NCBI GenBank assembly: GCA_965112735.1
Contig: OZ218950.1
Location: 1,364,001 to 1,428,000 of the forward strand
Source: Phaeosaccion multiseriatum
Lineage: Eukaryota; Protista; Ochrophyta, other classes
Reading direction: 5' to 3'
DNA: 64,000 nt
Shown here: positions 12,881-52,400 of the stretch, piece by piece
Numbering within the stretch: the stretch's first letter is position 1
Layout of the letters: each line of letters starts with the position of its first letter
Made by a program: the position numbers and the translations under genes
The notes under the pieces: model-generated
The model's input: only the letters and a program-made list of their open reading frames with translations
Databases searched by the model: none
What the model was told of the DNA's origin: nothing

Positions 12881-13390
12881 CACACAGAGAAAGGCAGGAG
12901 GATAAAAGCAGCACAGCAGGAGAGAGGAGAAGAAAGGTGGGTACGAGAGCTGACCCCCCCTCCCCGTTTACAATGATTCCTTGGCACCCAAAAACGCACA
13001 AACCTTCCGTGAAAATTGCTGCCTGCTGCTGTTCAGGCCATCGGCACTCCCAAAGGAGTTCCTTCATCTTGCACGGCCCATAACCCTCTGTTTCTGCCCC
13101 CCCCCTCGCCTCCTCATGACTCCCTTTCAATCCCTTTCCTCCAATGGGGGAGACCAGGGAGACCACAGCGTCATATTTTTCTTTCTCTCTCTCACCATCG
13201 ACTCGTTACTCGCCCATGTTTTCTCACTTGCCCCTCCAGCAGAGAGAAAGACAGGAGGATAACAGCAGCACAGCAGGAGAGAGGAGAAGAAAAAGGGGGG
13301 TACAAGAGCTGACCCGGCCCCCCAACCCGCCGAGGTCAGCTAATAAAACAATCCTTGCTTGGCAAAGGAACAAGCAAGCATTTCCCATAT
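12881..13390 (+). repeat. Degenerate direct repeat (about 85-bp core, period about 360 bp) upstream of the PKS start
   Basis: agagaaaggcaggaggataaaagcagcacagcaggagagaggagaagaaa..gtacgagagctgaccc (12885-12960) versus agagaaagacaggaggataacagcagcacagcaggagagaggagaagaaa..gtacaagagctgaccc (13243-13316). Confidence 0.85.
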
Positions 13391-13443
13391 CATGCTTGCT
13401 CACTTGCCGCTCTAGCGTTGGATCGGGCCAAGGAGGAGAGAGA

Positions 13444-16400: not shown

Positions 16401-19400
16401 TTGGCGGTGTCAATGCCCACGTCATCCTGGAGGGGACGGCCATCTCACACTCGGAGAAGACCAACGTCAGAGCCTCCCCGTTCACGAGCAAAAAGGCCTT
16501 CAAGCTGCTGCCCGCCCCACCGACATCGGCGGCCGGAAAAAACTCCTTGGCAGTAGAGCTCCGCGGTGTCAGTCCAGCTGAACGCCAAGAGAGGCTTCGA
16601 TCCGTCATCTCCGACATCGCCCTCTCCAGCACGGCAGGCTCTGTCGGCATCGACATGGACAAACCTCTCATGGAGGCTGGCATGGATTCGTTGGCGCTCA
16701 TGGAGCTGAGGCAGCGTCTGCACCTGCTCACGGATATCCCCGTTAGCAGTGCCGCCCTCTTCGCCCACCCCACCGTGGCGGCCTTGGCGGAGTGGTTGGA
16801 CTCAGCGCTCATGGAGGGAAGTGCGAGCAGCCTACGCCTGTCCAGGAGGCTGCCATCGTCTGAAGGGGGGGGCGACGCTTCTGCCCCGCTGGCAATAGTG
16901 AGCATGGCGTGCCGCTTCCCCGGAGGCGCAGACAGTCCCGACGCTTTCTGGTCCATGCTGCTGGAGGGAAAGGACTGCATCACCGCCATGCCCTCGGGCA
17001 GACTCACTGGTGCGGCGAAGAAGTGGCACGGAGGCTTCATCGACGGCGTGGAGATGTTTGACAACGCCACATTTGGCATCTCCGTAGCCGAGGCCGAGGC
17101 CATGGACCCCACGCAGCGCATCATGCTCGAGGTCGGCTACGAGGCGCTGCACGAGGCAGGCTTCTCTATGGCCACGCTACGCAACAGCAACACCGGAGTG
17201 TTCGTGGGCTCCATGCAGCACGGCGACTGGGCCGCGCTGAACAAGGATGGTGACACCAAAGCTCACTCCATGATGGGCGAGTCAGCGGGCTGCCCTGCAA
17301 ATCGCCTGTCCTACGCACTGGGCTTGCGAGGCCCAAGCATATCGGTTGATACGCTTTGCTCTTCCTCGCTCGTTGCCTTGGACACGGCTTGTCGCTACCT
17401 TCGCTTCGGCACGTGCGATGCTGCGGTTGTGGGAGGAGTGAACCTGCTGCTCGGCTCCCGTTCCTTCGAGCAGCTCGACAAGGGAGGTTTCTTGTCCAAG
17501 GACTGGTACGTACGGGAGAATGGGGGGGCTGGCCTTGGGGAGCATCGAGCTCCTATAACTCGAGTAGAGTCATAAAGGGCTTGCTGACAGGTAAACACAA
17601 GCATCATCCCTCTCATCGGCTTGTCCTTCCTTCTCTGCCCCCATCTGCCTCGTGCTGCTACCGAAGGCGCTGCAAGACCTTCGACGCAGCGGCTAACGGC
17701 TACGTCCGAGGAGAGGGCTGCGGCGCCTTGGTGGTGAAGCGGCTTGACGACGCGGAGCGCAGTGGAGACAACATCCTGGCCGTCGTGCGGGGAAGCTCCG
17801 TGAACCACAATGGGCGCTCTATGCGGCTCACAGCACCCAGTCCAGACGCACAGCAGACGCTGATGCAGGCAGCCTTGGAGGAGGCGGGTGTAGCGGGCAG
17901 CGAGGTTCACTTCGTGGAGGCGCACGGCACGGGCACGGCTCTTGGCGACCCCATCGAGATGAGCGCTCTCAAAGCCGCCTACGGAGAAGGGCGGGAGAGC
18001 TCTTTCCCACTCATGGTGGGAGCGGTCAAGACTAACATTGGTCACTTGGAGGGCGCCGCAGGCATCGCGGGACTCATCAAGACCATCCTCGCGCTTCAGC
18101 ACCGAGCTGTGCCACGCAATCTGCACCTCGGCAAGCTCAATCCTGAGATTAGTGTTGATGGATTTGCGGTGGCATTCCCTTCGTCGAGACTATCTCCATT
18201 GGGTAGCGAGGAGGGACACCCCAATGGCAGCGAGGAGGTGCTGTACGCAGGAGTAAGCTCGTTCGGAGCAGGAGGCACCAACGCCCATGTGGTGCTGAGC
18301 AGCGCTGCGCCGAGAGTGGAGGGAGGGGTCTCGAAAGCGTCGAAGGGGAGTGAGGATACGGAGGTCGCCTCACCTGCGCACGTCTTTGTCTTCACGGGGC
18401 AAGGCTCGCAGTACCCCGGAATGGGCAAGGAGCTCTACGACGAGGTTAGTTGATTCGTTGCGCGCACCATCTCCGTCTCAGTCCTCTCTTGTCATTGCCT
18501 CTGTTGTGCTCCATCACCTCGGCCCACCTTCCCCCCATTCTCATATTCGTCTCTCTCTCTTGTTCCCTCCGCTGTTTGTGTCTCTCTTTTGGTGCCTCAA
18601 CAGCGTGCGGTCTTTCGCGAGTGCGTGCAGCGGTGCAGCAGGCTGCTCATGGAGCGGGCCTGGCTGGACAAGTCTGTGGTGGAGCTCATGTACCCGGCGG
18701 TCGCTGAGGACAGGGAGGAGGAGGAGTGGGAGACTGCACAAGCGCTGCTGAAGGAGACACGCTACTGCCAGCCGTGCCTGTTTGTGCTGGAATACGCCCT
18801 TTGCGCGCTGTGGAAGTCGGAGGGAGTGGAGCCGTCGATGGTGATGGGCCACAGTCTGGGCGAGGTAGTGGCGGCGTGCGTGGCCGGCGTCATGTCGCTG
18901 GAGGACGGGCTGATGCTGTCCGCCAAGAGAGGAGCCGCCATGCAGGCCTGCCCCGAGGGGGGTGGAGTGATGATCGCAGTGAAAACGGGCAGGGAAGCAG
19001 CAATGGCAAGTATCGACGCTGCAGGGGGGGCAGGCGAGGTGGTGCTGGCGTCGTCGAACGGACCGAGCGCGAGCGTGATCTCTGGGGCGCGCAGCGCTGT
19101 GGACAAGGTGGTGGAGAAGCTCACGGCAGATGGGGTGGGCTGCAAGGCCCTGGACGTGTCGCACGCCTTCCACTCTCCTCTGATGGAGCCCGCTGTACGT
19201 GCGCTGGAGGAGGCACTGAGGCAGGTGTCATTCAGCGCCCCACGCATCCCCCTGGTGTCCAACGTGACAGGCGAGGTGGTGAAGGCTGAGGAGGTGACGC
19301 AGGTAGCGTACTGGGTGCAACACATGCTGTCGCCGGTGCTGTTCGCGGAGAGTATCACCACGCTGCTCCGGGAGAGGCCTGAAGGTGTACGAGTGGTAGA

Positions 19401-22400
19401 GATTGGGCCCAGCTCTGTGCTGATCAACATGGCGCGGCAATGCGAGGGAGAGAGGTCGGACGTGATGTGGCAGCCTTCCATGCGGCGGGAGGGGAGCGAC
19501 ACCGCCTCGTTCGACAGAGCAGTGGCGGCAGTACTGGGCAAGCCCACACCTCTGTTCCCCACCCGTCGTGCGCTCCCTTGGTTCGAGCAGCAGGCGCATG
19601 CGATGGTACCAAGCGGCGGCGTCGTCGAGAAGAAGGGAGGAACACTCCTCTCATGCCGCTTCACCCCTCAGCTCAACGGCTTGCTGCAGGATCACGCGGT
19701 GGGAGGAGTGGTGCTCATGCCGGGCATGGGGTACATCGAGATTGGCCTTGCCGCCTTGCTGAAGGGCAAGCCTTTCCCTGGCGAGAGGCAAGTGGTCCTG
19801 AAGGGCCTGGTCTTCATATCTCCACTGGAAATTGCAGGCGCTCGTGCCCCCGATGTGGACCGTACGGTGGAGGGCTCCACCACTGTGGTCGCTTCTGAAG
19901 TCAGTGCCTTCGTCACTGCCCGCGGCAGCGTGCAGTTTATCGGAGGTCCCCACGGCAAGGCTGGAGAGACGGTGGCGAAGGCGACTTCCCTTCAATTGTG
20001 CACAAGGACGGAGGCAGAGACATTGGACGTGGCGCGGGTGAGAGCCGCGGTGGGGGACGAGGACATCGCCGAGGGGCTCTACCTCAAGCTTGCCAGTGCT
20101 GGTTATGACTACGGTGCCAGCTTTGTCCGAACGCAGCACCTGTTCGCAGCCAGTGGACAGGCCTTGTCGGTTGCGGCGGCAATGGATGGCAGCCTATCGG
20201 CGGAGTGGGAGATCAACGGCTTCTACCTCCACCCTGCAGTGTTGGATAATGCCGCGCACACGATGTTGGCGCTCTTGCCGGAGGAGCTGACGAGCAAGGC
20301 CTTTGCCGCCGTCTTCTTGCCCACCGGCTGCGAAGAGGTGCTTGTGCGAGGGGCCATCACGAGCGAGAAGGTGTGGGTTCATGCGGTGGTGAAGGAGGTG
20401 GACTCTCAAGCTCTTGCGATCGAGTGCGACATCGTGATAGCACACTTCGAGACGAAGCAAGTGCTCGTGCAGCTTAACCGCTTCCGGATGCAGCTCGCCC
20501 GAGGCTTCTCCCGCACCAACCCCGTCAGCCGAGCGCTGTATTCTCTAGAGTGGCTGCCCAACGATTCCATCTCCCGCAGCAGAGGTGACGTGGAAGAGCG
20601 AGAGGAAGCTTGGCTGCTCCTCACCAGCGGCGCTCGTGGCAGCTTGGACAAGGCAGCGAAAGAGAGCTTGCCCATCTCTGTGACACTGACGGAGAGGGAG
20701 GTCAAGATCATCGACGACTCCACCCTCGCGTCAGAAGCGCCAGCAGGATGGGGCCGTGTGGTGTGCACCTTGTTCGGCGGCAAGCAGCAGAGCCCCAGCC
20801 AAGAGGCACAGACGCTCCTCTCGTTGCTACAGCAGCTCTTACGAAGGCCAGCTCCCTTGATGGTGCTGGTGCAGGACACGCTGAGTGGCGGCGAGGGGTG
20901 GAGGCATCACTGGGTGTACGGCATGATTCGAACCGCTCGTGTCGAGCACCCTTCGCTGGCCATGACAGTGGTGGACGTGGGCAGCGAGGACCTGCCCAAG
21001 TGCTGGGCCATTGCATCACTGGGGCAGGACGTTTGGGTGCGAGACGGACGATATCTCACGCCTCAGCTGACTCGCTCCTCGGTAGTCAGTCTTCCCTTCT
21101 CCTTCGATCTCATGGCGAGGGGAAGCATCGAGGGAGGCTTGAAGCGCAGAGACGTACTCCCTTCCGAGAGACACGCTGCCTTGCAGGACGGGGAGATTGA
21201 AATTTGTGTCAAGGCGGTGGGGCTCAACTTCAGAGACGTGCTGAATGTGCTCGACCTGTACCCTGGCGACCCTGGGCAGCCTGGCATCGAGCTATCGGGG
21301 GTGGTCACTCGAGCATCGCGAAACTCGCGCTTTCAAGTGGGAGACAAGGTCTACGGGTTTCCGGACAAGGGCTGCTTCTGCTCCCACGTAACGACACGTG
21401 ACGTGTGTCTGGCCATCATGCCTTCCAACAGGACCTTTGATGACATGGCAGCGTTGCCTATCGCGTGGCTCACAGTGGTGCACGCCTTTGAGCAACTCGC
21501 TGGCTTGAAGCGTGGTGAGAAGGTGCTCATCCATGCCGCGTCAGATGGAGTGGGTCTGGTGGCCGTGCAGATTGCTCAGCGCATCGGAGCGGAGATCTAC
21601 GCCACTGCTGGATCCGAGGAGAAGCACGCCTACTTACGAGGCCTGGGCGTGAAGCACGTTGCGTCGTCGAGAGATGCGGAGGCCTTCAAGGCTTCCATGG
21701 GAGCTGCAAAGGTGGATGTGGTGCTCAATTGCCTGTCCGACAACTTCATCCCTTACTCTCTGGAGCTGCTGACGAAGAACGGGCGCTTCATGGAGATCGG
21801 CAAGCGAGGCGTGTGGACCGGGGAGGCGATGAAGGCTGCCAGGCCCGACGTGCTGTACGAGCTGATTGCGCTGGACTCCATGATAGCAGACGACTTCAAG
21901 GCCGAGAAGCAGGGCTGGGCGTTCGCTAGGCTGGAGCAGCTGACAGCGGACAGTGAGGCGGGCAGGGCTGAGGCGCTACCAGTGACGGCGTTCGACTTGA
22001 GGGATGAGCTTGCGGAGGCAATGAACTTCCTCAGAACTGCGAAGCATATAGGGAAGGTTGTGCTCAGTAGCCCTGAGTGTGGCATTCCCGTCGTGCGAGA
22101 TGGGACTTACGTTATCAGCGGTGGGCTGGGGGCACTGGGGCTGGCGACTGCGAAGCATTTGGCTGATAAAGGAGCTCGTCATCTTGTACTGCTCTCGCGA
22201 GGGGGAAGGGTCAAGGCGGACTCCCAGTCGCTGTGGGAGGAGCTTCTCAACGTGCCCGGCGGGGTGAGCACCAAGGCTGTATCGTGCGACGTGTCTAGCG
22301 CGCAGTCGCTTGAGAAGGCCCTAGGCACGGCGCTCAGCAGCATGCCGCCCGTGCGAGGTGTCATCCACGCTGCCGGCGTGCTCGACGATCGCTTGCTGGT

Positions 22401-25400
22401 GGACCAGACGCCCGAGAGTATCGAAGAGGTCTTCAAGCCGAAGGTGGAGGGCGCTTGGAATCTGCACGAGCTGTCGCTGCAGATGGCCTGGCCCTTGGAC
22501 TTCTTTGTGTCCTACACATCCATGGCAGGTGTGCTAGGCAATGCAGGCCAGGCCAACTATGCTGCAGCCAACGCTGCTGTGGACGGGCTGATGCAGCATC
22601 GTCGGCGTCTCGGTCACTCCAGCTCTGTGGCCCTGCAGTGGGGGCCGTGGGGCGAAGCTGGCATGGCCGCTCGGTCCGAAGTTGCCATGGCCAGTCTGGA
22701 GATGGCCGGCGTTGGGCTCATCAGTAAGGCATTAGGTATGGCGGCGCTTGATGCCGGCGTGTCAGCCCCATCTGCGGTATCGCGCGAGCTCCTGGTCCTG
22801 CCTGGCATGGACTGGCCCGCCTTTTCTCAGGCGGCTGGCAACCCGGGGATGCTTGATGCTCTCGTTAGAGAGGCTTCGATGGTGGGACCGCAGAACAAGG
22901 CTAGCAACAGTGTGACTACCGAGGTTAAGCGCGACCTACTGGAGCTGTCGGAGGAAGAGCGAAAGCCCATGCTGCAGGCTTTAATCATGGAGATGGCGAA
23001 AGCATGCATTGGGGAAGCAGGCATCGAGCTCGACGCTTTGAGGCCTTTGATGGAGGCTGGGCTGGACTCCATGTCTACGGTGGAGCTTCGAAGTCGACTC
23101 CAAGCTCGCTTCGGCGTGCCGGTCCCCAACGACGTGCTCTTCAGTCACCCCTCGGTGGCAGCGCTGACTGTGTGGCTCGAGGGCTTGGTCTTGGGGGCTG
23201 AGGAGGGTGAATATGAGGAGAGGAATGCTGAACCGGCTGGAGGTAGCATGACTGCCCCCCTGGCTATTGTGGGCATGGCGTGCCGCTTTCCGGGGGGCTC
23301 GAACAGTCCAGAGGCCTTCTGGTCAATGCTGCGCGCAGGTACTGATTGCATTCAGACTGCCCCTCTGAACCGGTGGGCGAGAAAAGAGGGGAGCGAGGAT
23401 TGGCAAGGCAGCTTCATCGCTGAGGTGGAAATGTTTGACCCCGCTGTATTCGGCATCTCGTTTGCCGAAGCGGCTGCGATGGATCCGCACCAGCGAGTGA
23501 TGCTGGAGGTTGGATACGAGGCATTGGTCAACGCGGGGTGCGACAAAGCAAGCTTGGCGGGCAGTCGGGCAGGCGTCTTCATCGGCATGATGAACCTCGG
23601 CGACTGGGGCTACCAGGGCAAGGATGTAGGGGCTGGAGTATACCGCACTATGGGTCGCATCCAATGTGGCGTTGCCAATCGGCTCTCGTACGTGCTGGGG
23701 CTGCAGGGCCCGTCCATGACCACTGACACGGCGTGCTCGTCATCGCTGGTGGCCTTGGAAAACGCTTGCAGCAGCTTACGCATGGGCAAGTGCGATTCCG
23801 CTGTCGTCGGGGGCGTCAATTGCTTGCTCGGGCCAGTGGCCTTTGAGGACATTCAGGGCAGCGGCTTCCTGTCGCCGGACTGGTAAGTGCTTCCATTTTG
23901 TACCTCCGCACTAATGGTTCTCCTCCTCCGTCTCGTCCGACTTTACTTGCGCCGCCGACTAAAACTCCCCTCACGCTACCCATGCCCTTCTCAGGCGCTG
24001 CAAGACGTTCGACGCGTCGGCAAACGGATACGTGCGTGGTGAAGGATGCGGTGCCGTTGTGCTGAAACGTCTAGATTACGCCCTCGCTGCCGGAGACACG
24101 GTCCTCGCTGTGATTGAGGGCTGTGCCGTGAACCACAACGGAACCAGTGCCCGCCTCACGGCCCCCAGCCCCGCCGCCCAGCAGAGACTCATCGAGGCGA
24201 CGCTGCGTGAGGCCGGTCGAGAGGGCTCCGAGGTACGCATCGTGGAGGCGCACGGCACGGGAACCTCGCTAGGCGACCCCATCGAGATGAGCGCTCTCAG
24301 GGCCACGTACGGGAAGAACCGTGACGACTCTTTCCCGCTTGTGGTGGGTGCAGTCAAGACCAATATTGGCCATCTGGAGGGTGCGGCGGGCATTGCCGGG
24401 CTCATCAAGGCCGTCTTGATGCTGCAGCACCGCGCCGTGCCCGCCAACCTTCACCTCGAGAGCGTCAACCCGGAGCTGGACATGGACGGCTTCCCCGTGC
24501 AGCTCCCGTCGGTGATGGTGCAGCTGGAGGACGAGGGAGATATGTTGGTGGGGGTGAGCTCATTCGGGGCGGGAGGAACGAATGCACACGTGCTGCTGAG
24601 GAGCCATGGGGAGAAGAGTGACTCCGTACTGACGGCTGGTATGAAAAGCGATGGGGGCCCCTTCGTCAAGGAGGAGGCGCTCTTCCCGAATCGTGTGGCC
24701 TTCCCGTGGTACAAGAGCGATAATCACGCTTTATTTCCGAGTGGAGGGGTGCGAGCTGAGAAGGGCGGGGTGCTGCTGTCCTGCCCATTCTCTCCCAGGC
24801 TCAAGGGCCTGCTGCAGGAGCACGCAGTGGGGGGGGTGGTGCTCATGCCGGGCATGGGCTACATTGAGCTGGCCCTGGCCACGCTGCTGAGGGGCGAGGC
24901 CTTCCCCGCAGATGGCCAGGTGCGCATGAAGGGCCTCGTCTTCACGGCCCCGCTGGAGGTGGCAGGCGTCCGTGTACCTGGCGTGGAGCGCATGGTGGAT
25001 GGGTCCACGACGGTGGCATGCTCGGAGGTGAACGTGTTCCTCTCTGCCCACGGTAAGACGCGGATCACGGGCGGCTCCCGCGGCAAGGCAGGTGAGGCTG
25101 TGGCCAGGGCGGCGTCAGTGGTGCTGGAGGCAAGAGAGGCTACTGCAATGATGGACGTGAGGAGCATCCAGGAGGCAGTGGGGCAGCGAGACGTGTCGGG
25201 TGAGCTGTACGTCACGTTCGCCAAGGCCGGCTTCAACTACGGCCCCCGCTTCAGGCGGACAGAGCGCTTGTACGCTGCCGAGGGACAGGCTCTGTCCGTG
25301 GCGACAGCGCAGGACCCCAGCCTGTGCTCTGAGTGGGAGGTGCGTGGATTCTACCTCCACCCCGCCGTGCTGGACAGTGCCGCACACACCATGCTTGCGC

Positions 25401-28400
25401 TTCTACCTTCTGATCTAACCAAGGGTGATACGTTCTTGCCAGCTGGATGCAATGACGTGGTTGCGAAGGGCGCCATCAGAGGAGACAAGGTGTGGGTGCA
25501 TACCGTGCTCACCGAGATCAGCGACAAGCGCGACAGCGTCAACTTTGACATTGTCATTGCCGACTTTGACAGCCAGTACGTGCTCGTGACCATGAAGGGC
25601 GTCAAGCTGCAGAGGGCCATGGGCTTTACGCTCCTGAACCCTCTTCGTCGAGCCTTATACTATCTGGAGTGGCAGCCAGACAAGGCTCTGGCTCTGGCAA
25701 CCACCACGGGGAAGGATGGTGTGGAGAAGGAGACGTGGCTGGCTTTGGTAGATAGAGTAAGTGCAGCTACAGCGTTGGTGAAGCGTATTGAGCAATCAGT
25801 GCCCGAGCACGTTACGCTGCGTGTGCAGGAGCGTGCCTATGACCAGGATGTGGTGAGGGCCTTGGAGAGGGGCGAGTGGTCGCGAGTGCTGTACGTGATC
25901 GGCGGTGGGAGAGAGGAGGGACAGACGGCAAGGTCGTCAGCCAGCGCCGCTCAGCAGGAAGCACAGAAGCTGCTGGCGGTAACGCAGCAGCTGGCCAAGA
26001 GACAACTCCCCTTGATGGTGCTACTACACGACACGCTGAGCAGGGGGGGCGAGGGATGGGCACACATGCTGGTCTTTGGCATGATTCGCTCCGTTCGTAT
26101 CGAGCGGCCAGAGATGCAGATCATGGTCGTGGAAGCGGATGTGGAGGACATGAGCTTGGTGTTGTGTCTTCCCCTTCAGAGTCAGGACGTGCGTGTGCAA
26201 GGAGGAGAGTGCGAGACGCCTCAGCTGACTCGCTCCTCGGTAGTCAGCCTTCCCTTCTCCTTCGATCTCATGGCGAGGGGAACCATCGAAGGAGGCTTGA
26301 AGCGCAGAGACATACTCCCTTCCGAGAGAGACACTGCCTTGCAGGACGGGGAGATTGAAATTTGTGTCAAGGCGGTGGGGCTCAACTTCAGAGACGTGCT
26401 GAACGTGCTCGACCTGTACCCTGGCGACCCTGGGCAGCCTGGCATCGAGCTATCGGGGGTGGTCACTCGAGCATCGCGAAACTCGCGCTTTCAAGTGGGA
26501 GACAAGGTCTACGGGTTTCCGGACAAGGGATGCTTCTGCTCCCACGTAACGACAAGTGACGTGTGTCTGGCCAATATGCCTTCCAACAGGACCTTCGAGG
26601 ACATGGCAGCGCTGCCTATCGCGTGGCTCACAGTGGTGCACGCCTTTGAGCAACTCGCTGGCTTGAAGCGTGGTGAGAAGGTGCTCATCCATGCCGCGTC
26701 AGGTGGAGTGGGTCTGGTGGCCGTGCAGATTGCTCAGCGCATCGGAGCGGAGATCTACGCCACTGCTGGATCCGAGGAGAAGCACGCCTACTTGCGAGGT
26801 CTGGGCGTGAAGCACGTTGCGTCGTCGCGAGATGCGGAGGCCTTCAAGGCTTCCATGGGAGCTGCAAAGGTGGATGTGGTGCTCAATTGCCTGTCCGACA
26901 ACTTCATCCCTTACTCTCTGGAGCTGCTGACGAAGAACGGGCGCTTCATGGAGATCGGCAAGCGAGGCGTGTGGACCAGGGAGGCGATGAAGGCTGCCAG
27001 GCCCGACGTGCTGTACGAGCCGATTGCGCTGGACTCCATGATAGCAGACGACTTCAAGGCCGAGAAGCAGGGCTGGGCGTTCGCTGGGCTGGAGCAGCTG
27101 ACAGCGGACAGTGAGGCGGGCAGGGCTGAGGCGCTACCAGTGAAGGCGTTCGACTTGAGGGATGAGCTTGCGGAGGCAATGAACTTCCTCAGAACTGCGA
27201 AGCATATAGGCAAGGTTGTGCTCAGTAGCCCTGAGTGTGGCATTCCCGTCGTGCGAGATGGGACTTACGTTATCAGCGGTGGGCTGGGGGCGCTGGGGCT
27301 GGCGACTGCGAAGCATTTGGCTGATAAAGGAGCTCGTCATCTTGTACTGCTCTCGCGAGGGGGAAGGGTCAAGGCGGACTCCCAGGCGCTGTGGGAGGAG
27401 CTTCTCAACGTGCCCGGCGGGGTGAGCACCAGGGCTGTATCGTGCGACGTGTCTAGCGCGCAGTCGCTTGAGAAGGCCCTAGGCACGGCACTCAGCAGCA
27501 TGCCGCCCGTGCGAGGTGTCATCCATGCTGCTGGCGTGCTCGACGATCGCTTGCTGGTGGACCAGACGCCCGAGAGTATCGAAGAGGTCTTCAAGCCGAA
27601 GGTGGAGGGCGCTTGGAATCTGCACGAGCTGTCGCTGCAGATGGCCTGGCCCTTGGACTTCTTTGTGTCCTACACATCCATGGCGGGTGTGCTAGGTAAT
27701 GCAGGCCAGGCCAACTATGCTGCAGCCAACGCTGCTGTGGACGGGCTGATGCAGCATCGTCGGCGTCTCGGTCACTCCAGCTCTGTGGCCCTGCAGTGGG
27801 GGCCGTGGGCCGAAGCTGGCATGGCCGCTCGGTCCGAAGTTGCCATGGCCAGTCTGGAGATGGCCGGCGTTGGGCTCATCAGTAAGGCATTGGGTATGGC
27901 GGCGCTTGATGCTGGCGTGTCAGCCCCATCTGCGGTATCGCGCGAGCTCCTGGTCCTGCCTGGCATGGACTGGCCCGCCTTTTCTCAGGCGGCTGGCAAC
28001 CCGGGGATGCTTGATGCTCTCGTTACAGAGGCTTCAATTGTTGGACCGCAGAACAAGGCTAGCAACAGTGTGACTACCGAGGTTAAGCGCGACCTACTGG
28101 AGCTGTTGGAGGAAGAGCGAAAGCCCATGCTGCAGGCTTTAATCATGGAGATGGCAAAAGCATGCATTGGGGAAGCAGACATCGAGCTCGACGCTTTGAG
28201 GCCTTTGATGGAGGCTGGGCTGGACTCCATGTCTACGGTGGAGCTTCGGAGTCGACTCCAAGCTCGCTTCGGCGTGCCGGTCCCCAACGACGTGCTCTTC
28301 AGTCACCCCTCAGTGGCAGCGCTGACTGTGTGGCTCGAGGGCTTGGTCTTGGGGACTGAGGAGGGTGAATATGAGGAGAGGAATGCTGAACCGGCTGGAG

Positions 28401-40400: not shown

Positions 40401-43400
40401 TGACGTTGCCTGTGACCATGGAGCCTGTGGGTCAAGGCGGGTGGACAGGAGCGCTCGTTGCTGCCGTGAGCTCTTTCGGTGCCGGCGGAACCAATGCTCA
40501 CGCCGTGCTATCCGGTCCCAGAGCTGGAAGTACGGCCGCGCATGCCGACAGAGAGGGCGTCAGTCTCAACGATGCTCTTCAGAAGGACAGCGAGTCAGAG
40601 CGTGGCGCATTGTACCCCACACGCCAAGCATTTCGTTGGTTCAGGCCTCCACTTGCATTCATGCCCAGTGGCGAGGTGGTCCAAGAGGGAGACGGAATGC
40701 GGCTCTCTTGCCCCTTCTCGCCTCACATCAAGGACCTTCTCAAGGACCACGCAGTCAACAATGTGGTGATCATTCCAGGGGTGACGTACATTGAAGTGGG
40801 TGTTGTCACTGCTCTAGGAGGAAGACAGGTCGGGGCGGAGCAGCAAGTCGTCCTGCAAGGAGCCAACTTTGTGGCTCCATTGGAGATTGAGGGTTTCCAG
40901 CACACGGGCACGGACCAGGCGCAGAGCCGCAATACTATTGTCTGTGACGGCTTGAGTGCTCTATACGCGAGCGATGGAAGCATGCAGTTTTTCGGAGGCA
41001 TTGAGGGTGACAAGGGAGCGACCGCGAGGATGGACCACGTGTCTGTCATGGAGCGAACCGAGACGCGTGACATGCTGGATATAGAGGGAATCAAGGGGCG
41101 GGTAGGGACTGTGGACTTGGTCCATGGCCTGTACAAGGCAATGGCGGATGCCAACTTCAACTATGGCCCTCGCTTTGAGCGGAATTTACAGATGTTCGCC
41201 AATGCCGGAGAGGTGCTATCGGTCGTGCGTGCTCTCGACTCGGACCTGTGCGAGCCTTGGGAGGTAACGGGCTTTGCTATGCACCCTGCGGTGCTCGACA
41301 ATGCGACTCACTCACTTTTGCACGCAATCCCACGCCAGTTGCTGAGAGCGAGGGATGGAGCTCCATTCCTGCCTGTTGGCTTTGACGAGGTGATCGTTTC
41401 TGCCCCCATAACGGGAGAGACAGTTTGGGTGCACGCGACGCTCGGTGAAGTGGAGCCCGGGGGCAACAGCATCAAGTTTGATATCAAGATTGCCGACTTT
41501 GATAGCAAGCAGATTCTTATGGAGATGCGTGGGTTCCGGGCTCAGCGGGCGAGAGGCTTTGCGCGCCCCAATCCGCTTCGTCGGGCGATGTACACGCTGG
41601 AATGGCAGACCACTGAGTCGTCTACACAAGACGAGGGCCCTGGAAGTGATACTGACCCTGCTGAGGCTGCGGCGCGTCAAAAGTGGCTCGTGGTTATTCC
41701 ACAGGACGAGAGGGGGGGAGAGACTGCAATTATTGCTGCAGTGCGGCGCTGTGCTCCGGAGAACGTGGACGTACACACTCGATATGGGCGGATGGACGCC
41801 TCCGGGGATGATGGCAATCTTCTTCTCGGAGAGGACGAGTGGGATCGCGTCTTGTACGTGCTGATACCCGGAGCTGGCGAAGAAGACGCAGAAGGAAGCC
41901 GCCAAGCACGAGCGGCCTACGCCCTCATGGCTCTGCTCAGGAGCCTGTGCACTGCATCAAGGGTACCGCTGACGGTTTTGACGAGAGGCGTCCAAAGTGG
42001 CGAGGACTGGCGTCACAGCTGGGTGACTGGGCTGGTGCGGACTGCGAGGGTGGAGCACCCCTCCCTGCAGATTAGCGTGGTGGACCTGAGCGACAAGAAG
42101 GTCCAAGACAGCGAGCTTGCCTTAGGCTTGGCCTTCCCTACTGCCACAGAAGATGTGTGGGTACACGATGAGCAGTGCTGGGCTCCTCAGCTTGCACGTC
42201 AGCCCCTGCAGCTTCCCTTCGCGCTTGACTTGAAGGCAAGAGGCAGCATTGCCAACGCTTTCGCCCTTCGTGATGATGTGAGCAATGGCAAACATCAGCC
42301 CCTTGATGACCGCTCCGTGGAGGTGGCCGTAAGGGCTGTTGGCCTTAACTTCCGGGACGTGCTGAATGTGCTGGACATGTACCCTGGCGATCCTGGAGAT
42401 CCTTGCTCCGAGTTCGCCGGAGAGGTGCTCAGTGTGGGAGGAAGCTCGCGCTTCCGTGTCGGCGACGCAGTGTTTGGCTTTGCGGATGCGGGATGCTTGC
42501 GCACTCATTCGACGACGAGTGACGCATGCCTGGCCTTGATGCCGGCGGTGCTGAGCTTCGAGCAGGCCGCTGCTCTTCCCACCGTGTGCTTGACGGTAGC
42601 GAAAGCCTTCCACGACCTCAAGGCTGGAGAGAAGGTGTTGATTCATGCCGCATCGGGCGGTGTGGGCCTTGCCGCCGTGCAGTATGCTCAGCGGGTCGGC
42701 GCAGAGGTGTACGCCACTGCCGGTGCTGCTGTGAAGCATGACTTCCTCCGGAGCTTGGGAGTGGAGCACATTGCGTCATCGAGAGACGCAGAGGCGTTCA
42801 AGCAGTCCATGGGTGAGATGAAGGTGGATGTGGTGCTCAACTCTCTGAGTGAAGACTACATTCCCTTCTCGCTTGCCATGCTAAGCGAGGGTGGTAGATT
42901 CGTCGAGATTGGCAAGCGAGGTGTATGGAGTCATGAGCAGATGCGCACCACCCGGTCCGATGTGAGGTACAACCTCGTCGCTGTGGACGCCATTATCGAG
43001 GTCGACTTTTCGGCGGGTGAGCCGGGCTGGATAAGCGACGAGCTGCAGCATCTGGCTGAAGACTGCATGTCTGGCAATGTGAAGCCCTTTCCGACCATAC
43101 CCTTTGACATGAGGGAGGATACTCAGAAGGCCATGGCACTCATGAGCCAAGCGAAGCACATCGGCAAGGTGGTGCTGACCAACCCCTCGTACGGTGTGCC
43201 AGTGGTGTCCGATGGCACGTACGTCATCAGTGGCGGTCTGGGGGCTCTCGGCCTCGTGACGGCCCAGCACCTCGCGTCGAGGGGCGCTCGTCACTTGGTG
43301 CTGCTGTCGAGGAGTGGGAAGGTCGCTGAGAGCATGACAGAACAGTGGCAGCAGCTTCGGAACACGGTGGAGCTGATCCATACTCCTTCTTGTGATGTTG

Positions 43401-46400
43401 CTGACGCTGAGGCACTTCGGACTTGCCTGGGGGGCGTGCTGCCCCTGCTGCCCCCAGTGCGCGGCGTGGTGCATGCTGCCGGGGTGCTGGATGATAAGCT
43501 GCTGGGAGAGCAAACGCCGGAGAGCGTGACGAACGTGTTCCGACCGAAGGTGCAGGGGGCGATAAACTTGCACGAGCTTTCGTTGGCTTGGGCGAAGGAG
43601 GAGGAGCGCGCTCCTGGCCTTGACTTCTTCTTTTGCTTCACATCCATGGCCGGAGTACTGGGTAACGCTGGACAGGCCAACTACGCTGCGGCGAACACGG
43701 CTGTGGACGGGCTGATGCGGCACAGGCGACACCTCGGGCTCGCAGGGACGTCATTGCAGTGGGGGCCGTGGGCTGACGTTGGTATGGCCGCCCAGCTCGA
43801 TATCGTTCAAAAGCAGTTGGAGCTGGCGGGTGTGGGTACGGTGTCAGCTGAGCTGGGCATGGCTGCCTTCGATGCGGCTGCGATGCCGTCAGCGTATTTG
43901 GGCGATGTTGCCGTTCTGCCTGGGATGGACTGGGCCAAGTTTGCAGAGAGCATGGGTGCGTCCCGCGGCTCGTTCCTTCTGTCAGGGCTTGTCGCAACAG
44001 CAGCGGGCGCGTCGAGCAACACCGAACTCAACAATGAAGTGCGCGAGGCGCTCTTGAGACTGCCCCCTGGCGAGCGACAGCAATCAGTGCGAATGGCGGT
44101 GCATGATATCGCCAAGGACCTCCTTGGGGAGGGTGCCGAAGAGCTGGACGCGAACAGTCCTTTGATGGAAGCAGGTCTTGACTCTTTGTCAACAGTGGAG
44201 CTGCGCGGCCGTCTACAGGCTCGCTTCGGGGCTGTAGTGACCAGTGACGTGCTCTTCGCGTATCCCACGGTAGCGGCGCTGGCAGTATGGATCGAAGCGG
44301 AGGTGCTTGGCGAGGTAGAGGAACCCGATGGCAGTCGCTCTGCGGCGATCGCTGCTGAATCGCACCGCACTGACTCAAGGGCGCCGCTGGCCGTCGTCGG
44401 GATCGCCTGTCGCTTCCCTGGAGGGGTTAAGAACCCCGAGGACTTCTGGGCTATGCTCTGTGCAGGGACAGACTGTATTGGAGCCAGCCCTGTTGGTCGC
44501 TGGGCCGATGAGGGTCAGAAGCAGTGGCAAGGGGGCTTCATTGATGGAGTGGAGGCTTTTGACAACACCTTCTTCGGCATTTCTGCGGCCGAGGCAGGTG
44601 CCATGGACCCTCATCAGCGCGTCATGCTGGAGGTGGGGTACGAGGCGCTGCACAGGGCGGGATACCGCAAGGACACACTACATGGCAGCAACACCGGTGT
44701 GTTCGTGGGTATGTCCGGCAGCGAGTGGGGCTCAGTGGTAGACGATGCGAACAAGGGTGCGTACTCCGTCATGGGCATGTCCAATGCGAGTCCGGCAAAT
44801 CGGATGTCTTACGTGCTGGGCCTCGGAGGGCCGAGCATGAGTGTCGACACGGCGTGCTCGTCGTCTTTGGTGGCACTGGAGGGGGCCTGCAGCAGCTTGC
44901 GGCTTGGGAAGTGTGACGTCGCCTTGGTGGGAGGCGTCAACTTGCTGCTGGGTATACAGACGTTCGAGACCCTCGCTGAAGGGGGTTTCCTGAGTCTTGA
45001 CTGGTAAGTGTGTGTTTCTTTTGTGTGGATGGTAGCTTGTTCTTGGGGCCGCGATGAGACCCAGATCAAAAGGCCCAAGCTGTCTGAAAGGCCCCTGTTG
45101 CTGATGTGATTACCTCTTCTCTGTTCTTCACTTTTGCAAACCCTCAATTCCTCATGGTCAGGCGCTGCAAGACGTTCGACGCTGCGGCCAACGGTTACGT
45201 CCGAGGTGAGGGCTGCGGCGCCGTGGTACTGAAGCGACTGGATGATGCACAGGCCACTGGCGACCACATCCTCGCAGTCGTCAATGGCTGCGCTGCGAAC
45301 CACAACGGGAGAAGTTTGCGCTACACTGCCCCGAGCCCTTCTGCTCAGCAGCGTCTGATGGAGCAGGCACTGGCGGAGGCCGGCTTGAGCGGTCTGGAGG
45401 TTGATTACGTGGAGGCACACGGCACCGGGACTTCTCTCGGCGACCCCATCGAGATGAGTGCTTTGAGGGCCGTGTATGGCCATGGCCGCGAGGAAGCTCG
45501 GCCCCTTTTGGTTGGGGCGGTGAAGACCAATATCGGGCATCTAGAGGGTGCGTCCGGAATCGCTGGCCTCATCAAAGCTCTGCTGGTCCTTCAGCATGGA
45601 TCTGCTCCGCCAAATCTCCACATGAGGAAGCTCAATCCGGAGCTTCGTTTGGATGGCTTTCCGGTGACTTTGCCGTCTACGATGGTGCCACTAAGTGCCA
45701 GGGACGGGGAGAGGCGCACGGCTGCTGTCAGCTCCTTCGGCGCGGGAGGAGCCAACGTCCACGCGGTGCTCAGCAGTTTCAGACCGACGATGGTAGAGGA
45801 GAGCGAGAGCGAAGCCTTGCTGCAGCTGGATGGACAGCAAGGCAAGAAGAGTTCACCGGTGACGTTTTTGTTCACAGGACAGGGCTCGCAGTACGTGGGC
45901 ATGGGCAGGGAGCTGTACGAGAAGGAGGGCGTGTTCCGAGAGTGCGTGCAGCGGTGCAGCAGGCTGCTCATGGAGCGGGCCTGGCTGGATAAGTCTGTGG
46001 TGGAGCTCATGTACCCTACTGCTGAGGGAGAGGAAAGTGCACAAGCGATGCTGAAGGAGACACGCTACTGCCAGCCGTGCCTGTTTGTGCTGGAGTACGC
46101 CCTGTGTGAGCTGTGGAAGTCGGAGGGCGTGGAGCCTTCCATGGTGATGGGCCACAGCCTGGGCGAGGCAGTGGCGGCGTGCGTGGCCGGCGTCATGTCG
46201 CTGGAGGACGGGCTGATGCTGTCCGCCAAGAGAGGAGCCGCCATGCAGGCCTGCCCCGAGGGCGAGGGGGTGATGTTCGCAGTGAGGGCAGGCCGCGTGG
46301 CTACGTTGGCAGGCATCGTGGCTGCTAGGCTGGCAGGCGAAGTGGTGCTGGCGTCGTCGAATGGACCGAGCGCGAGCGTGATCTCTGGAGCGCGCAGTGC

Positions 46401-49400
46401 TGTGGACAAGGTGGTGGAGAAGCTCACGGCAGATGGGGTGGGCTGCAAGGCCCTGGAGGTGTCGCACGCCTTCCACTCTCCTCTGATGGAGCCCGCTGTA
46501 CGTGCGCTGGAGGAGGTTCTGAGGCAGGTGTCATTCAGCGCCCCACGCATTCCCCTGGTGTCCAACGTGACGGGTGAGGTGGTGAAGGCTGAGGAGGTGA
46601 CGCAGGCGACGTACTGGGTGCAGCACATGCTGTCGCCAGTGCTGTTCGCAGAAGGCATCCACACGGTGGTGGAGCACTGGATGGAAGACGGGAGGGGGGC
46701 TGACCTGAGCATCGTTGAGTTGGGCCCCAACCCTGTGCTGAGCCGTATGGGGGCCAAGTGCGAGCGTCGCGAGGGGCTGGCGTGGATCTCCTCCCTCACG
46801 CGAGGGCAGAACTCTGAGGATTCGTTTGGAGCAGCCCTGGGCAGAGTAGCGGGGCCGGAGCATCTTGAGCTTTATCCGACTCGCCGATCATTTCCTTGGT
46901 ACAAGCCTCCGCTGGCGTTTATGCCGAATGGTGAGATGGTCCAGGAGGGAGATGGAATGAGGCTCCCCAGCCCCTTCTCCCCTTACCTTAAGGACCTTCT
47001 CAAGGACCATGCCGTCAACAATGTGGTGATCATTCCGGGGGTGACATACATTGAAGTGGGCGTCGTGGCTGCTCTAGGAGGAAGACAGCTCGGAGTGGAG
47101 CAGCAGGTAGTCCTGCAAGGAGCCAGCCTTGTGGTCCCACTGGAGATTGAGGGTTTCCAACAGGCGGGCATGGACCAGGCTCACAGCCGCCATACAATGG
47201 TCTGTGCCGGGATGAGTGCCCTTCACGCGGCAGATGGAAGCATGCAGTTCTTCGGAGGTGCCACGGGCGACAAGGGCACCACGGCAAGAATGAAGCACGT
47301 GTCTGTCACAGAGCGAAGCTCGGGGCGTGTTTCGTTGCACGTGGAATCCATTCGAGCCAGAGTTGGCGAGCAGGACAGATCGAGTGAGCTCTACAAGTCT
47401 TTCGCAGACGCCGGCTTCCAGTACGGCCCCCGCTTTCAGCGGACCCGCCATATGTACGGAGGGGACGGAGAGGTTCTGTCGGTCGTGTGTGCCATGGATG
47501 AGGAGCTGTGCGAGCCGTGGGAGATGAAGGGCTTTGCTCTGCACCCCGCGGTGCTGGACAATGCTACTCATACCATCATGCAAGCGCTGCCAAGGAAGCT
47601 GCTCAAGAAGGGGGGGGACTCTCCATTCCTACCTGCAGGCTTCGACGAAGTGGTTGTTTCCGCCTCCATGACGGGAAAGAACGTGTGGGTGCACACGAAG
47701 CTGAGTGAGGGCCAGTCAGTGGCGGACAGCGTCAAGTTTGACATCCGCATTGCAGACTTCGACAGCAAAGAGGTGCTCGTGGAGATGCGGGGCTTCCGCG
47801 TGCAGCGGGCGAGGAACTTTGTGCGTGTCAGCCCCGTTCGTCGTGCAATGTACGCATTGGAGTGGCAGGCCACTGAGCCGTCTACACAGGAGGAGCCCCC
47901 TGGTAGTGATACTGAGCCTGCTGAGGCGGCGGTGCCACAGAAGTGGCTGGTGGTTATTCCACAGGACGAGAGGGAGCGAGAGATGTCAATCATTGCTGCA
48001 GTGCGGCGCTGTGTTCCGGAGAACGTGCATGTACACACTCGATATGGGGGGGTGGACGCCTCCTGGGATGATGGTGCTCTTCTTCTTGGACAGGACGATT
48101 GGACTCGAGTCTTGTACGTGCCGATCTCTGGGGATGGCAAAGAGAACGTAGAAGGGGGTCACCAAGCACGAGCGGCCTACGCTCTGCTATCGCTACTCAG
48201 GAGCATGTTGTCCGCTACGTCGAATGTGCCGCTGACGGTCTTGACGAGGGGCGTCCAAAGCGGCGAGGACTGGCGTGACAGCTGGGTGACAGGTCTGGTG
48301 CGGACTGCGAGGATGGAGCACCCCTCCATGCAGATTGGTGTGGTGGACCTGAGCGACAAGAAGGTCCAAGACAGCGAGGTTGCCTTAGGCTTGGCCTTCC
48401 CTACTGCCACAGAAGATGTGTGGGTACACGATAGGCAGTGCTGGGCTCCTCAGCTTGTACACCAGCCCCTGCAGCTTCCCTTCTCGCTTGACTTGAAGGC
48501 AAGAGGCAGCATTGCCAACGCTTTCGCCCTTCGTGATGATGTGAACCATGGCAAACATCAGCCCCTTGACCCAGCTGGTAGCTCCGTACAGGTGGCAGTG
48601 AGGGCAGTTGGTCTTAACTTCCGGGACGTGCTGAATGTGCTGGACATGTACCCTGGCGATCCTGGAGATCCTTGCTCCGAGTTCGCCGGGGAGGTGATCA
48701 GTGTGGGAGGAATCTCGCGCTTCCGTGTCGGCGACGCAGTATTTGGCTTTGGGGATGCGGGATGTTTGCGCAGTCATATGACGACGAGTGATGTGTGTCT
48801 GGCCGTGATGCCGGCCGTGCTGAGCTTCGAGCAGGCCGCTGCACTTCCCACCGTGTTCCTCACCGTGATGAAGGGCCTTGAGGGCCTCAAGGCTGGAGAG
48901 AAGGTACTGATTCATGCCGCATCGGGCGGTGTGGGCCTTGCCGCCGTGCAGTATGCTCAGCGGGTGGGCGCAGAGGTGTACGCTACTGCCGGTGCTGCTG
49001 TGAAGCATGACTTCCTCCGGAGCTTGGGAGTGCAGCACATTGCGTCATCGAGAGACGCGGAGGCGTTCAAGCAGTCCATGGGTGAGTTGAGGGTGGACGT
49101 GGTGCTCAACTCTCTGAGTGATGACTACATTCCCTTCTCATTGGACATGCTGACAGAGGGAGGCAGATTCGTGGAGATTGGGAAGAGAGGTGTATGGAGT
49201 CATGAGCAGATGCGCACCACCCGGCCCGGTATACGGTACGAGCTGCTGGCATTGGATAGCATGATTGAGTCTGACTTTTCGGCGGGTGAGCCAGGCTGGA
49301 TCGGTGGCGGGCTGCAGCGTCTTGCTGAAGACTGCATGTCTGGCAATGTGAAGCCCTTACCGACCATACCCTTTGACATGAGGGAGGATACTGAGAAGGC

Positions 49401-52400
49401 CATGGCACTCATGCGCCAAGCGAAGCACATCGGCAAGGTGGTGCTGACCAACCCCTCGTACGGTGTGCCAGTTGCGTCCGATGGCACGTACGTCATCAGC
49501 GGCGGTCTGGGGGCTCTCGGGCTCGTAACGGCCCAGCACCTCGCGTCGAGGGGCGCTCGTCACTTGGTGCTGCTGTCGAGGAGTGGGAAGGTCGCTGAGA
49601 GCATGACTGAGCAGTGGCAGCGACTTCGAAAGACATCGCGTTTGACCATCCATACTCCGACCTGTGATGTTGCTGATGCTGAGGCACTTCGGACTTGCCT
49701 GGGGGGCGTGCTGCCTCTGCTGCCCCCTGTGCGCGGCGTGGTGCATGCTGCTGGGGTGCTGGATGATAAGCTGCTGGGAGAGCAAACGGTGGAGAGCGTG
49801 ACGAACGTGTTCCGACCAAAGGTGCAGGGGGCGATAAACTTGCACGAGCTTTCGTTGGCTTGGGCGAAGGAGGAGGGGCGCGCTCCTGGCCTTGACTTCT
49901 TCTTTTGCTTCACATCCATGGCGGGAGTATTGGGTAACGCTGGACAGGCCAACTACGCTGCGGCGAATGCGGCTGTGGACGGGCTGATGCGGCACAGGCG
50001 ACGCCTCGGGCTGGCAGGGACGTCATTGCAGTGGGGCCCGTGGGCTGATGTGGGTATGGCCGCCCAGCTCGATATTGTTCAAAAGCAGTTGGAGCTGGCG
50101 GGTGTGGGCACGGTGTCAGCTGAGCTGGGTATGTCGGCCTTCGATGCGGCTGCGACGCCGTCAGCGTCTTTAGCGGCCGTGGCCGTTCTGCCTGGCATGG
50201 ACTGGGCCAAGTTTGCAGACAGCGGGGGGGCGTCCCGCGGCTCATTCCTTCTGTCAGGGCTTGTCTCAACAGCAGCAGGCGCGTCGAGCAACACCGCACT
50301 AAGCAAAGAAGTGCGCGAGGAGCTGTTGGGGCTGTCCGCCGAAGACCGGAAACGTATGGTGAGCCTTGCGGTGATGGACATAGCCAAGGAGCTGATTGGG
50401 GAGGATGCCGATGAGCTGACCGACACCACCCTGCTGATGGAGGCAGGCCTTGATTCTTTGGCAACGGTGGAGATGCGTACTCGGTTGCAGTCTCGCTTTG
50501 GAGTGAATGTGACCAGCGATGTACTCTTCTCGTATCCAACGGTGGCAGCATTGGCGGTATGGGTCGACGATGAAGTACTGTCTCACGGTGTGGCTGGGCA
50601 TGGTGGCAGCGAAGAAGGGGCACCGCAGCAGCGAGTCTATGCGGAGCTCGAAGAGGAGCAGTCTCTCCACCAAGCGCGAGGAGAGCTCACGGCAGAGAGT
50701 CAGCGCCGCCGTCGTGGGCTGGCGGTGGTGGGCATGGCTTGTCGCTTCCCGGGGGGCGCAGATGACCCTGCCTCTTTCTGGGGGAACATTGTCGATGGAG
50801 TGGACTGTGCCACTCGGCTCCCCTTCGAGGGGTGGGGCAAGGAGACTTTAGGGCTGCACGGGGGCTTTTTGGATGATGAATTGGAGAGCTTCGATAATGA
50901 ACTCTTTGGCATTTCGTGCGGCGAGGCCAGCACCATGGACCCGAATCAGCGGTTGATGCTCCAAGTAGCGTACGAAGCACTTGCAGAGGCGGGCTTTGCT
51001 GACTTTGCGCGAGGAGACGCCGGAAGGGAGGAGTATGACGGCAAAAGGCAGGACAAGTATGCCATGAAGGGTTCAGACACGGGCGTCTTCATCGGTCTAT
51101 CCGGCACTGACTGGGCGACCGTGCAGAAGGACAGTGCACAGAAGGCTGATGCGTACACCCTCGGGGGAACGAGTGCCTCTCTGGTGGCCGGACGCATCAG
51201 CAATCGGCTTGGACTCGTGGGGCCAAGCTTAACGCTGGACACTGCGTGCTCGAGCTCGCTTGTTGCGCTGGAGGCCGCGTGCGACAAGCTCAGACTGGGC
51301 AAGTGCAAGACAGCCGTGGTGGGGGGCGTGAACTTACTTCTTCATCCCCAAGGCTTTGTTGCCCTCCGGAAGGCCGGTCTGCTTTCTAAGAAAGGGTAAG
51401 AGCAGGGGACGGCTGCATCTTATGTTTTGCAAAAGAGTGCTTCATTGCTTGGGTCGCTCCTCTAACTCATTGTCATCTCTTGCTTCCTCTTGTCTTGCTC
51501 TATCCATCTCAGTCGCACGGCCTCCTTTGCCGCCGGAGCCGATGGCTATGTCCGAGCGGAAGGCTGCGGAGCTGTGGTACTGAAACGCCTCTCGGACGCG
51601 GAAGCGGACCATGACAACATCCTGGCAGTCATTGAAGGATGCGCAGTCAATCACAACGGGCAAAGCGCTCAGATGACTGCCCCCAATGGCGTGGCGAAGC
51701 GAGAGGTCATGCGGAGGGCGTTGAGAGACGCAAGTCGCCGCGCCTGTGAAGTGGGATACGTGGAGGCGCACGGAACAGGCACGGTGCTGGGCGACTGCAT
51801 TGAGATGGGCGCTCTGCATGGGGTCTACCAGGAGGAGGAGCAATGGGGCGCTGAGGAGAAGGGGGGCGACGAAGGGGGGGTGTATCCGCTTCGCGTGGGT
51901 GCGGTGAAGACCAGCCTGGGACATATGGAGGGTGCATCGGGACTGGGGCAGCTCATTAAGGCTATTTTGGTCCTTCAGCACCAGCAGACACCTCCCAATC
52001 TGCATGGAGAGCACTTGTCCCCAGAGCTCGGCTACATTGAGGAGTCGCGCATTGCCCTCTGCTCGCAGCTCATTCCTTTCAAGACTCCTGTGGACTGGAA
52101 GGGCAGCAGCAGCAGCAGCAGCAGCAGTAGCGAGGAGGGAGGGGAAGCGCGAGCTGGTGCAGGCACGCTCATCGCAGCGGTGCACTCCTATGGCGTGGGC
52201 GGAACCAATGCTCACGTAATCTTGAGTAATTGGGGCGCAGCGGCGTTGCCGAGGGGGATAGGGCGTGAAGGCAGAGCTGAAGAGAAGAAGGAGACTACAG
52301 GGCCTCCATTGGTATTGAAGTTCTCCACTCGCTACCAGCCAAAGAACCCCACGCAAAGCGTCCAAAGGGTGATCGGGATCGAAGAAGACGTGCACGAGAA

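Follow-up and report, generated by a model that had tools for sequence, protein, structure and literature searches.

The closest described relatives of the gene discussed here are the multimodular type I polyketide synthases (PKSs) of algae, which are encoded by giant, intron-bearing nuclear genes with near-identical modules both within a gene and between paralogues, combine modules that carry their own acyltransferase (cis-AT modules) with AT-less ones, and evolve through the duplication of modules and the displacement of AT domains (Shelest et al. 2015, PMC4661987). The PKZILLA genes of Prymnesium parvum are likewise very large assembly-line PKS genes with a modest number of GT-AG introns; they have 34 introns over far more modules, and the accessible part of their description reports no pattern of one intron per ketosynthase (KS) (10.1101/2024.01.29.577497). 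Here we analyse a window of 64,000 nt from the ochrophyte alga Phaeosaccion multiseriatum (contig OZ218950.1; G000:C1:1364001-1428000 in our numbering; G+C content 60%), taken from an assembly of 67 Mb in 22 contigs. Between about 13.1 kb and at least 54.2 kb, the plus strand of the window contains one very large, intron-split type I PKS gene that resembles these systems in size, near-identical modules and mixture of module types, and in which KS domains KS2 to KS8 are all interrupted by an intron at the same codon. The algal survey cites introns solely as a sign of eukaryotic origin and describes no conserved KS intron position and no register between exons and modules; unlike in that work, the recombination junctions of module gain and loss could be mapped at this locus. 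Positions given below are those of the window unless prefixed by C1.

Two further kinds of system invite comparison. In modular animal proteins, repeat units bounded by introns of the same phase have been added and removed in frame by exon shuffling; compared with those cassette exons, the intron described here lies within a catalytic domain, the unit is an enzymatic module of 4-6 kb, and the introns are short. In bacterial modular PKSs, homologous recombination within KS and AT sequences alters module number in frame, and chimeric junctions inside domains are tolerated; bacterial PKS genes are intron-free, whereas the repeat unit of the window gene contains an intron that appears to delimit some of the exchanged tracts. 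The original prediction for this locus was that the shared intron makes each module a cassette that alternative splicing could skip. We consider instead, with a probability of about 0.82, that a single ancestral intron spread as modules and genes were duplicated, that it is spliced constitutively, and that module number has been varied in the DNA.

One codon in seven ketosynthases

The introns of KS2 to KS8 lie at 17506-17666 (161 nt, GTACGT...AAG), 23883-23994 (112 nt), 29044-29220 (177 nt), 35293-35452 (160 nt), 39740-39894 (155 nt), 45004-45161 (158 nt) and 51396-51512 (117 nt, GTAAGA...CAG). Reading the junctions, with their splice sites, codons and motifs, bore out the claim that all seven fall in phase 2 at one KS codon, between the half of the domain that bears the catalytic Cys and the half that bears the two His residues. 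Every intron begins with GT (as GTAAGT, GTACGT or GTAAGA), ends with AG, and separates the second from the third base of the codon directly downstream of [F/L]LSxD/K, within the motif GFLSxD[W/G]/RC (LSKKG/RT in KS8). The split codon is TGG (Trp) in KS2, KS3, KS5, KS6 and KS7, GGG (Gly) in KS4 and GGT (Gly) in KS8, and the downstream exon opens with its third base, followed by CGC TGC AAG (RCKTFD) or, in KS8, by sequence encoding RTASFA. Retention of any of the seven would bring an in-frame stop into the message, immediately in five of them, and their GC content of 0.47-0.56 compares with 0.62 in exon 10. Judged by their GT-AG ends, exact restoration of the frame, stops on retention and lower GC, all seven would be classed as spliceosomal introns of the U2 type.

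The position of the intron within the domain is equally uniform. Each exon closes with positions 3 to about 222 of the 252-position PF00109 profile, which puts the intron at approximately position 222, and the next exon opens with the last 30 or so positions of PF00109, detected directly as 224/225-252 in the C-halves of KS2 and KS8, and continues into PF02801 from residue 37. In KS2 to KS8 the Cys motif (TACSSS or TLCSSS) stands upstream of the intron, and HGTGT and N-x-GH stand downstream. KS1 departs from this pattern: it is uninterrupted at the family codon (LLSDKCMVFD), has an intron of its own from about 14888 to about 15389, 11 codons further downstream, and has a Ser where the catalytic Cys would stand (INTASSSSLVA). 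The window shows neither a FAAL nor an AT domain upstream of KS1, whose intron pattern is its own.

Introns of 112-177 nt thus separate exons of 4.3-6.2 kb. The lengths of exons 9 to 13 (5049, 6072, 4287, 5109 and 6234 nt) follow from their coordinates, and exons 7 and 8 together come to the 6057 nt claimed for them once an additional phase-0 intron, located in the AT of module 2 (18445-18603), is taken out; the in-frame translations of exons 9 to 13 are free of stops. Divisibility by three had been presented as a feature of these exons, and it is true of all of them, but it is no second observation, because all the introns share one phase. The flanking introns share their phase, as those of cassette exons do, and it is formally correct that skipping a 2-2 phase-symmetric exon would delete one module without loss of frame and unite a Cys half with a His-His half. 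The further claim that the two halves so joined would be closely similar stands in part. It applies to KS5 and KS7, whose amino acid sequences are 100% identical in the N-half and 98% in the C-half, and to the C-halves of KS3 and KS4 (96%, against 72% for their N-halves), but elsewhere the N-halves of KS2 to KS8 share 51-72% and the C-halves 57-75% amino acid identity.

Family-wide spread and module gain and loss in DNA

Scanned in six frames with PF00109, the genome as a whole gave 121 N-terminal KS matches, 116 of which end at profile positions 220-233. The remaining five comprise three uninterrupted matches, one that had been read into its intron and one that is truncated. The three uninterrupted matches each lie 1.1-1.7 kb upstream of an intron-bearing KS, as KS1 does here, and are therefore taken to be loader-type first KSs. 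When 20 junctions on 11 contigs were sampled, 18 proved to be interrupted, and in every one of the 18 the interruption is a GT-AG intron of 117-489 nt in phase 2 at the same Gly/Trp codon. Four of these 18 introns belong to a divergent, FAAL-type class of KS, in which the matches start at about profile position 60, and which is encoded by apparently single-module genes. Such genes offer no module for skipping, and a skipping function is therefore not needed to explain the presence of the intron there.

The intron is also found outside this genome. A 941-nt contig of the JGI metagenome 3300045918 (L034:600-941) encodes a KS N-half with 63% amino acid identity to that of KS6 and carries the same phase-2 intron in a form of only 59 nt; shared by an environmental relative, the intron must therefore predate this species. 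The length of 59 nt points to a relative with shorter introns that has the same PKS family. In the PKS of Chrysoparadoxa australica, the sole named eukaryotic match, both KSs are uninterrupted at the site, and the intron is therefore lineage-specific and not general to ochrophyte PKSs. The EukProt entry GEMP01014597 (P0147), an ACP-KS fragment (ACP, acyl carrier protein) from the transcriptome of another protist, departs from its KS frame precisely at this junction, behind ...MLSRDG, and the change of frame could represent a splice variant or an assembly error. Two additional candidate relatives (P0077 and P0170) were dropped, as their loci look bacterial. The same codon and phase thus recur genome-wide and in a related organism, as is characteristic of a paralogous intron position, and the sequences strongly indicate that the KS intron was inherited by duplication throughout the family. 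The original prediction had itself attributed the shared position to descent from one ancestral KS, and the genome-wide and environmental junctions lend this strong support. The recurrence is far beyond chance, and its cause is shared descent.

Module number has changed in the DNA within the immediate neighbourhood. On the same contig, 36-180 kb upstream and both on the minus strand, lie two paralogous genes. Paralogue A (C1:1185001-1235000) is 95-97% identical to the window gene and possesses an extra unit of 5,244 nt that consists of a module resembling exon 9 and a further copy of the KS4-type intron (177 nt), flanked by 643-nt repeats of a KS C-half. Relative to the window, paralogue B (C1:1268001-1328000) has lost 6,279 nt in frame; sequence like that of exon 10 gives way to sequence like that of exon 11 within the AT coding region, where diagnostic sites put the switch at approximately 30685/36945, at a distance of more than 1.4 kb from any KS intron. 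The gain and the loss are each divisible by three. In effect, paralogues A and B are the module-inserted and module-deleted versions of one synthase, fixed by homologous recombination in coding sequence. Between the window gene and paralogue A, identity is 98.9% at first and second codon positions, 96.3% at third positions and 93.6% in introns. First and second positions are more conserved than third, which shows purifying selection on the coding sequence; the introns are not under such selection, and appear to diverge at least as fast as third positions, with no additional constraint detectable in the alignment. The KS7-type intron of paralogue B contains, some 8-12 nt after the donor, a 12.6-kb retrotransposon of the Ty3/gypsy type (C1:1291011-1303617) with 196-nt long terminal repeats that are 100% identical and an open reading frame (ORF) of 3,274 codons for reverse transcriptase, RNase H, a DEDDy 3'-5' exonuclease and integrase.

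Exchange has also taken place between the modules of the window gene itself. Self-comparison of the window reveals a 6.2-kb block of 91% identity (30929-37154 against 40631-46848) that runs from the border between AT and dehydratase (DH) through DH, enoylreductase (ER), ketoreductase (KR), ACP, KS and intron as far as the end of the following AT. Within this block the introns of KS5 and KS7 are 94% identical, and they were therefore copied passively along with the surrounding DNA; no alignment could be made among the remaining KS introns. Another block, of 98-99% identity, is common to modules 3 and 4 over part of the ER, the KR and the ACP (21058 to about 23260), after which identity drops to about 70% over the KS N-half and vanishes in the intron, to reappear at 96-100% from 16 nt before the end of the intron, at 23979, through the KS C-half to about 24600; the last 16 nt of the KS3 intron thus fall within a block of 98% identity common to it and the KS4 intron. 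A homogenised AT block in module 2 begins no more than 7 nt from the end of the AT intron that is private to that module. These are the two block edges, out of roughly a dozen, that coincide with intron borders, and the others fall at the domain borders ACP/KS, KS/linker and AT/DH. It may be that introns too divergent to align bring conversion tracts to a halt.

Domain order and surroundings of the gene

The gene is a multi-module type I PKS of a stramenopile-type alga. In order, it encodes a loader KS1 and an ACP, six extension modules, and KS8 with an ACP and a terminal domain; exons were searched singly with Pfam and tblastn, each by reference and not as one spliced model. KS domains with Cys and His-His motifs, optional ATs, reductive loops and ACPs follow one another in series in one frame, as in type I modular PKSs generally. 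KS1 is spread over several small exons within 13144-15893, whose edges, pieced together from tblastn and Pfam matches, are approximate. The exon end at 16358-17505 encodes an ACP and the N-half of KS2 (TLCSSS), with PF00109 positions 3-222 running to the exon end. Exons 7 and 8 (17667-23882) encode the KS2 C-half, AT, DH, ER, KR, ACP and the KS3 N-half. Exon 9 (23995-29043) encodes the KS3 C-half, DH, ER, KR, ACP and the KS4 N-half, whereas exon 10 (29221-35292) has an AT between the KS4 C-half and the DH, ER, KR, ACP and KS5 N-half. Exon 11 (35453-39739) is the shortest, with the KS5 C-half, AT, KR, ACP and KS6 N-half; it is the sole module with a KR and neither DH nor ER, in agreement with its designation as the hydroxyl-forming module. 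Exon 12 (39895-45003) repeats the AT-less arrangement, from the KS6 C-half through DH, ER, KR and ACP to the KS7 N-half, and exon 13 (45162-51395) comprises the KS7 C-half, AT, DH, ER, KR, ACP and the KS8 N-half. The domain order from KS1(Ser)-ACP onwards is thus KS2-AT-DH-ER-KR-ACP, KS3-DH-ER-KR-ACP, KS4-AT-DH-ER-KR-ACP, KS5-AT-KR-ACP, KS6-DH-ER-KR-ACP, KS7-AT-DH-ER-KR-ACP and KS8-ACP.

The AT profile PF00698 matches exons 7/8, 10, 11 and 13 and neither exon 9 nor exon 12. The synthase is consequently no strict cis-AT enzyme, in which every module would carry an AT, but a mixture in which two of the six extension modules (23995-29043 and 39895-45003) are AT-less and embedded among cis-AT modules. 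From the block comparison, modules with and without an AT seem to exchange their DH-ER-KR-ACP parts freely. Downstream of the last intron, 51513-54168 encodes the KS8 C-half, an ACP and the start of a terminal domain with a weak match to hexapeptide repeats, below the Pfam cut-off. The gene probably continues past 54168 into an ORF at 54230-55279; in 51513-55279, after KS8 and its ACP, Pfam gave no thioesterase or reductase match, only the weak hexapeptide-repeat one. Long (TCAC)n and (GGGA)n microsatellites occur at 15947-16257, 6241-6778, 6935-7094 and 58136-58505, among them a (TCAC)78 array that separates the KS1 C-half from the coding exon after it and is probably intronic despite its open frame. 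An 830-nt trinucleotide array of the (GAG)n type at 59292-60121 overlaps a minus-strand ORF (59834-60598) and may represent an acidic or low-complexity coding repeat of a neighbouring gene.

Skipping, recombination and common descent

What might explain an intron that recurs at one codon in every extension KS? In the explanation that we prefer, an ancestral chain-extending KS would have had a single, ordinary GT-AG intron in the codon of a conserved loop just before Arg-Cys, and every duplication of a module or a whole gene would have taken this intron along. An intron copied with each duplication would therefore occupy the same codon and phase in each extension KS and leave exons that are module-sized and divisible by three. 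The introns are most likely removed constitutively, and module number would change by in-register unequal recombination and gene conversion between similar coding stretches of the KS C-half and the AT, with neighbouring modules and paralogues as partners. The intron positions and phases, their spread through the family, the gain and loss of modules in DNA and the unconstrained intron sequences are all observed, and the cassette property is a by-product of shared descent. Several points weigh against this explanation. A word search of sequence collections with the exon end of the KS6 N-half found no match above 63% identity and no transcript or protein of this species, and because that search gave no RNA of this organism, we only infer constitutive splicing. 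The join 23882>29221 would pair the KS3 N-half with a KS4 C-half 96% identical to the one KS3 already has, and 35292>45162 would pair the KS5 N-half with a KS7 C-half 98% identical to that of KS5; from the sequences, productive skipping through these two near-native joins may still take place at a low level. The retention of the intron in more than 100 KSs, moreover, is compatible with neutrality in a young expansion and is no proof of it.

Regulated exon skipping between phase-matched KS introns, which would yield shorter synthases with altered chain length or hydroxylation by way of chimeric KSs, finds no support here and is in our judgement very improbable, and splicing-programmed skipping of modules seems unlikely on what the gene sequence offers, attractive as it is made by the fact that every inter-KS exon is of phase 2-2 and holds one module, that both catalytic halves are intact in KS2 to KS8, and that two particular skips would rebuild a KS that is 96-100% native. 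The paralogues with one module more or fewer, with exons under purifying selection, further suggest that altered assembly lines are tolerated. The same intron, however, sits in the FAAL-type KS genes that appear to be single-module, and the introns show no conserved elements: they are unalignable between modules, and orthologous copies are less similar (93.6%) than third codon positions (96.3%). The donors are strong (GTAAGT or GTACGT), so that neither conserved flanking intron sequence nor weak splice sites, the signs of a regulated cassette, is present. Each donor lies 112-177 nt from its own acceptor and 4.4-6.4 kb from the acceptor that skipping would require, which favours pairing across the intron (PMC4378016). 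Retention is the dominant form of alternative splicing in algae whose introns are short (46.5% in Volvox) and exon skipping a minor one (9.5%), and short introns around exons of 4-6 kb therefore predict retention over skipping (PMC4378016). Since retained introns introduce in-frame stops, mis-splicing would truncate the protein and not reprogramme it. For the PKZILLA genes, the sole giant PKS genes of algae to have been studied with RNA data, the authors concluded that each produces one major transcript (10.1101/2024.01.29.577497). In the dinoflagellate Amphidinium gibbosum, a KS gene undergoes both exon skipping and alternative 3' splice-site use, and skipping is the commonest event in that organism, but it does not remove a whole module and rebuild a KS (PMC7557087); the literature searched gave no precedent for a periodic KS intron or for module skipping by splicing. 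That synthases of several lengths arise from one gene by skipping of module-sized exons is, if anything, even less probable, 35292>45162, with a KS 98-100% native, being the most feasible route. If it were true, it would be the first RNA-level reprogramming of an assembly line and a new layer of control in polyketide biosynthesis.

Could the intron act in the DNA itself? As a spacer too divergent to align, it could bound conversion and crossover tracts, so that the two KS halves evolve separately and cassettes are shuffled in frame. We regard this as possible yet doubtful, although clearly better placed than skipping; such a role would be a side effect and not a selected function, and is compatible with propagation of one ancestral intron by duplication. 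The 98%-identical KS3/KS4 C-half block that starts 16 nt inside the intron, directly downstream of N-halves that are only about 70% identical, speaks for a spacer role, as do the AT block of module 2 at the edge of its private intron and the extra unit of paralogue A, which is exactly one exon plus one intron. It is opposed by the majority of block edges, which lie at domain borders and not at introns, by the 6.2-kb block that crosses an intron uninterrupted, and by the crossover of paralogue B within AT coding sequence; an in-register crossover in a tandem array would, besides, add or remove one period regardless of any intron. A decayed or misassembled pseudogene, in which the interruptions would not be spliced introns at all, is the least credible reading, and nothing observed speaks for it. 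It is contradicted by canonical splice sites with exact frame restoration in 7/7 cases and in-frame stops on retention, by full domain sets and intact motifs in KS2 to KS8 (KS1 alone has Ser for Cys, as loader-type KSs do), and by first and second codon positions that are more conserved than third ones.

Under the preferred explanation, a single intron traces how a very large family of eukaryotic PKSs expanded to more than 100 KS domains at about 20 loci, and in KS3 and KS4 the mid-KS intron marks the point at which the two halves of the domain have separate histories. The locus and its paralogues provide natural, mapped cases of in-frame gain and loss of modules, with junctions in the KS C-half and in the AT, and these apparently tolerated fusion points should be of interest to those who engineer assembly lines.

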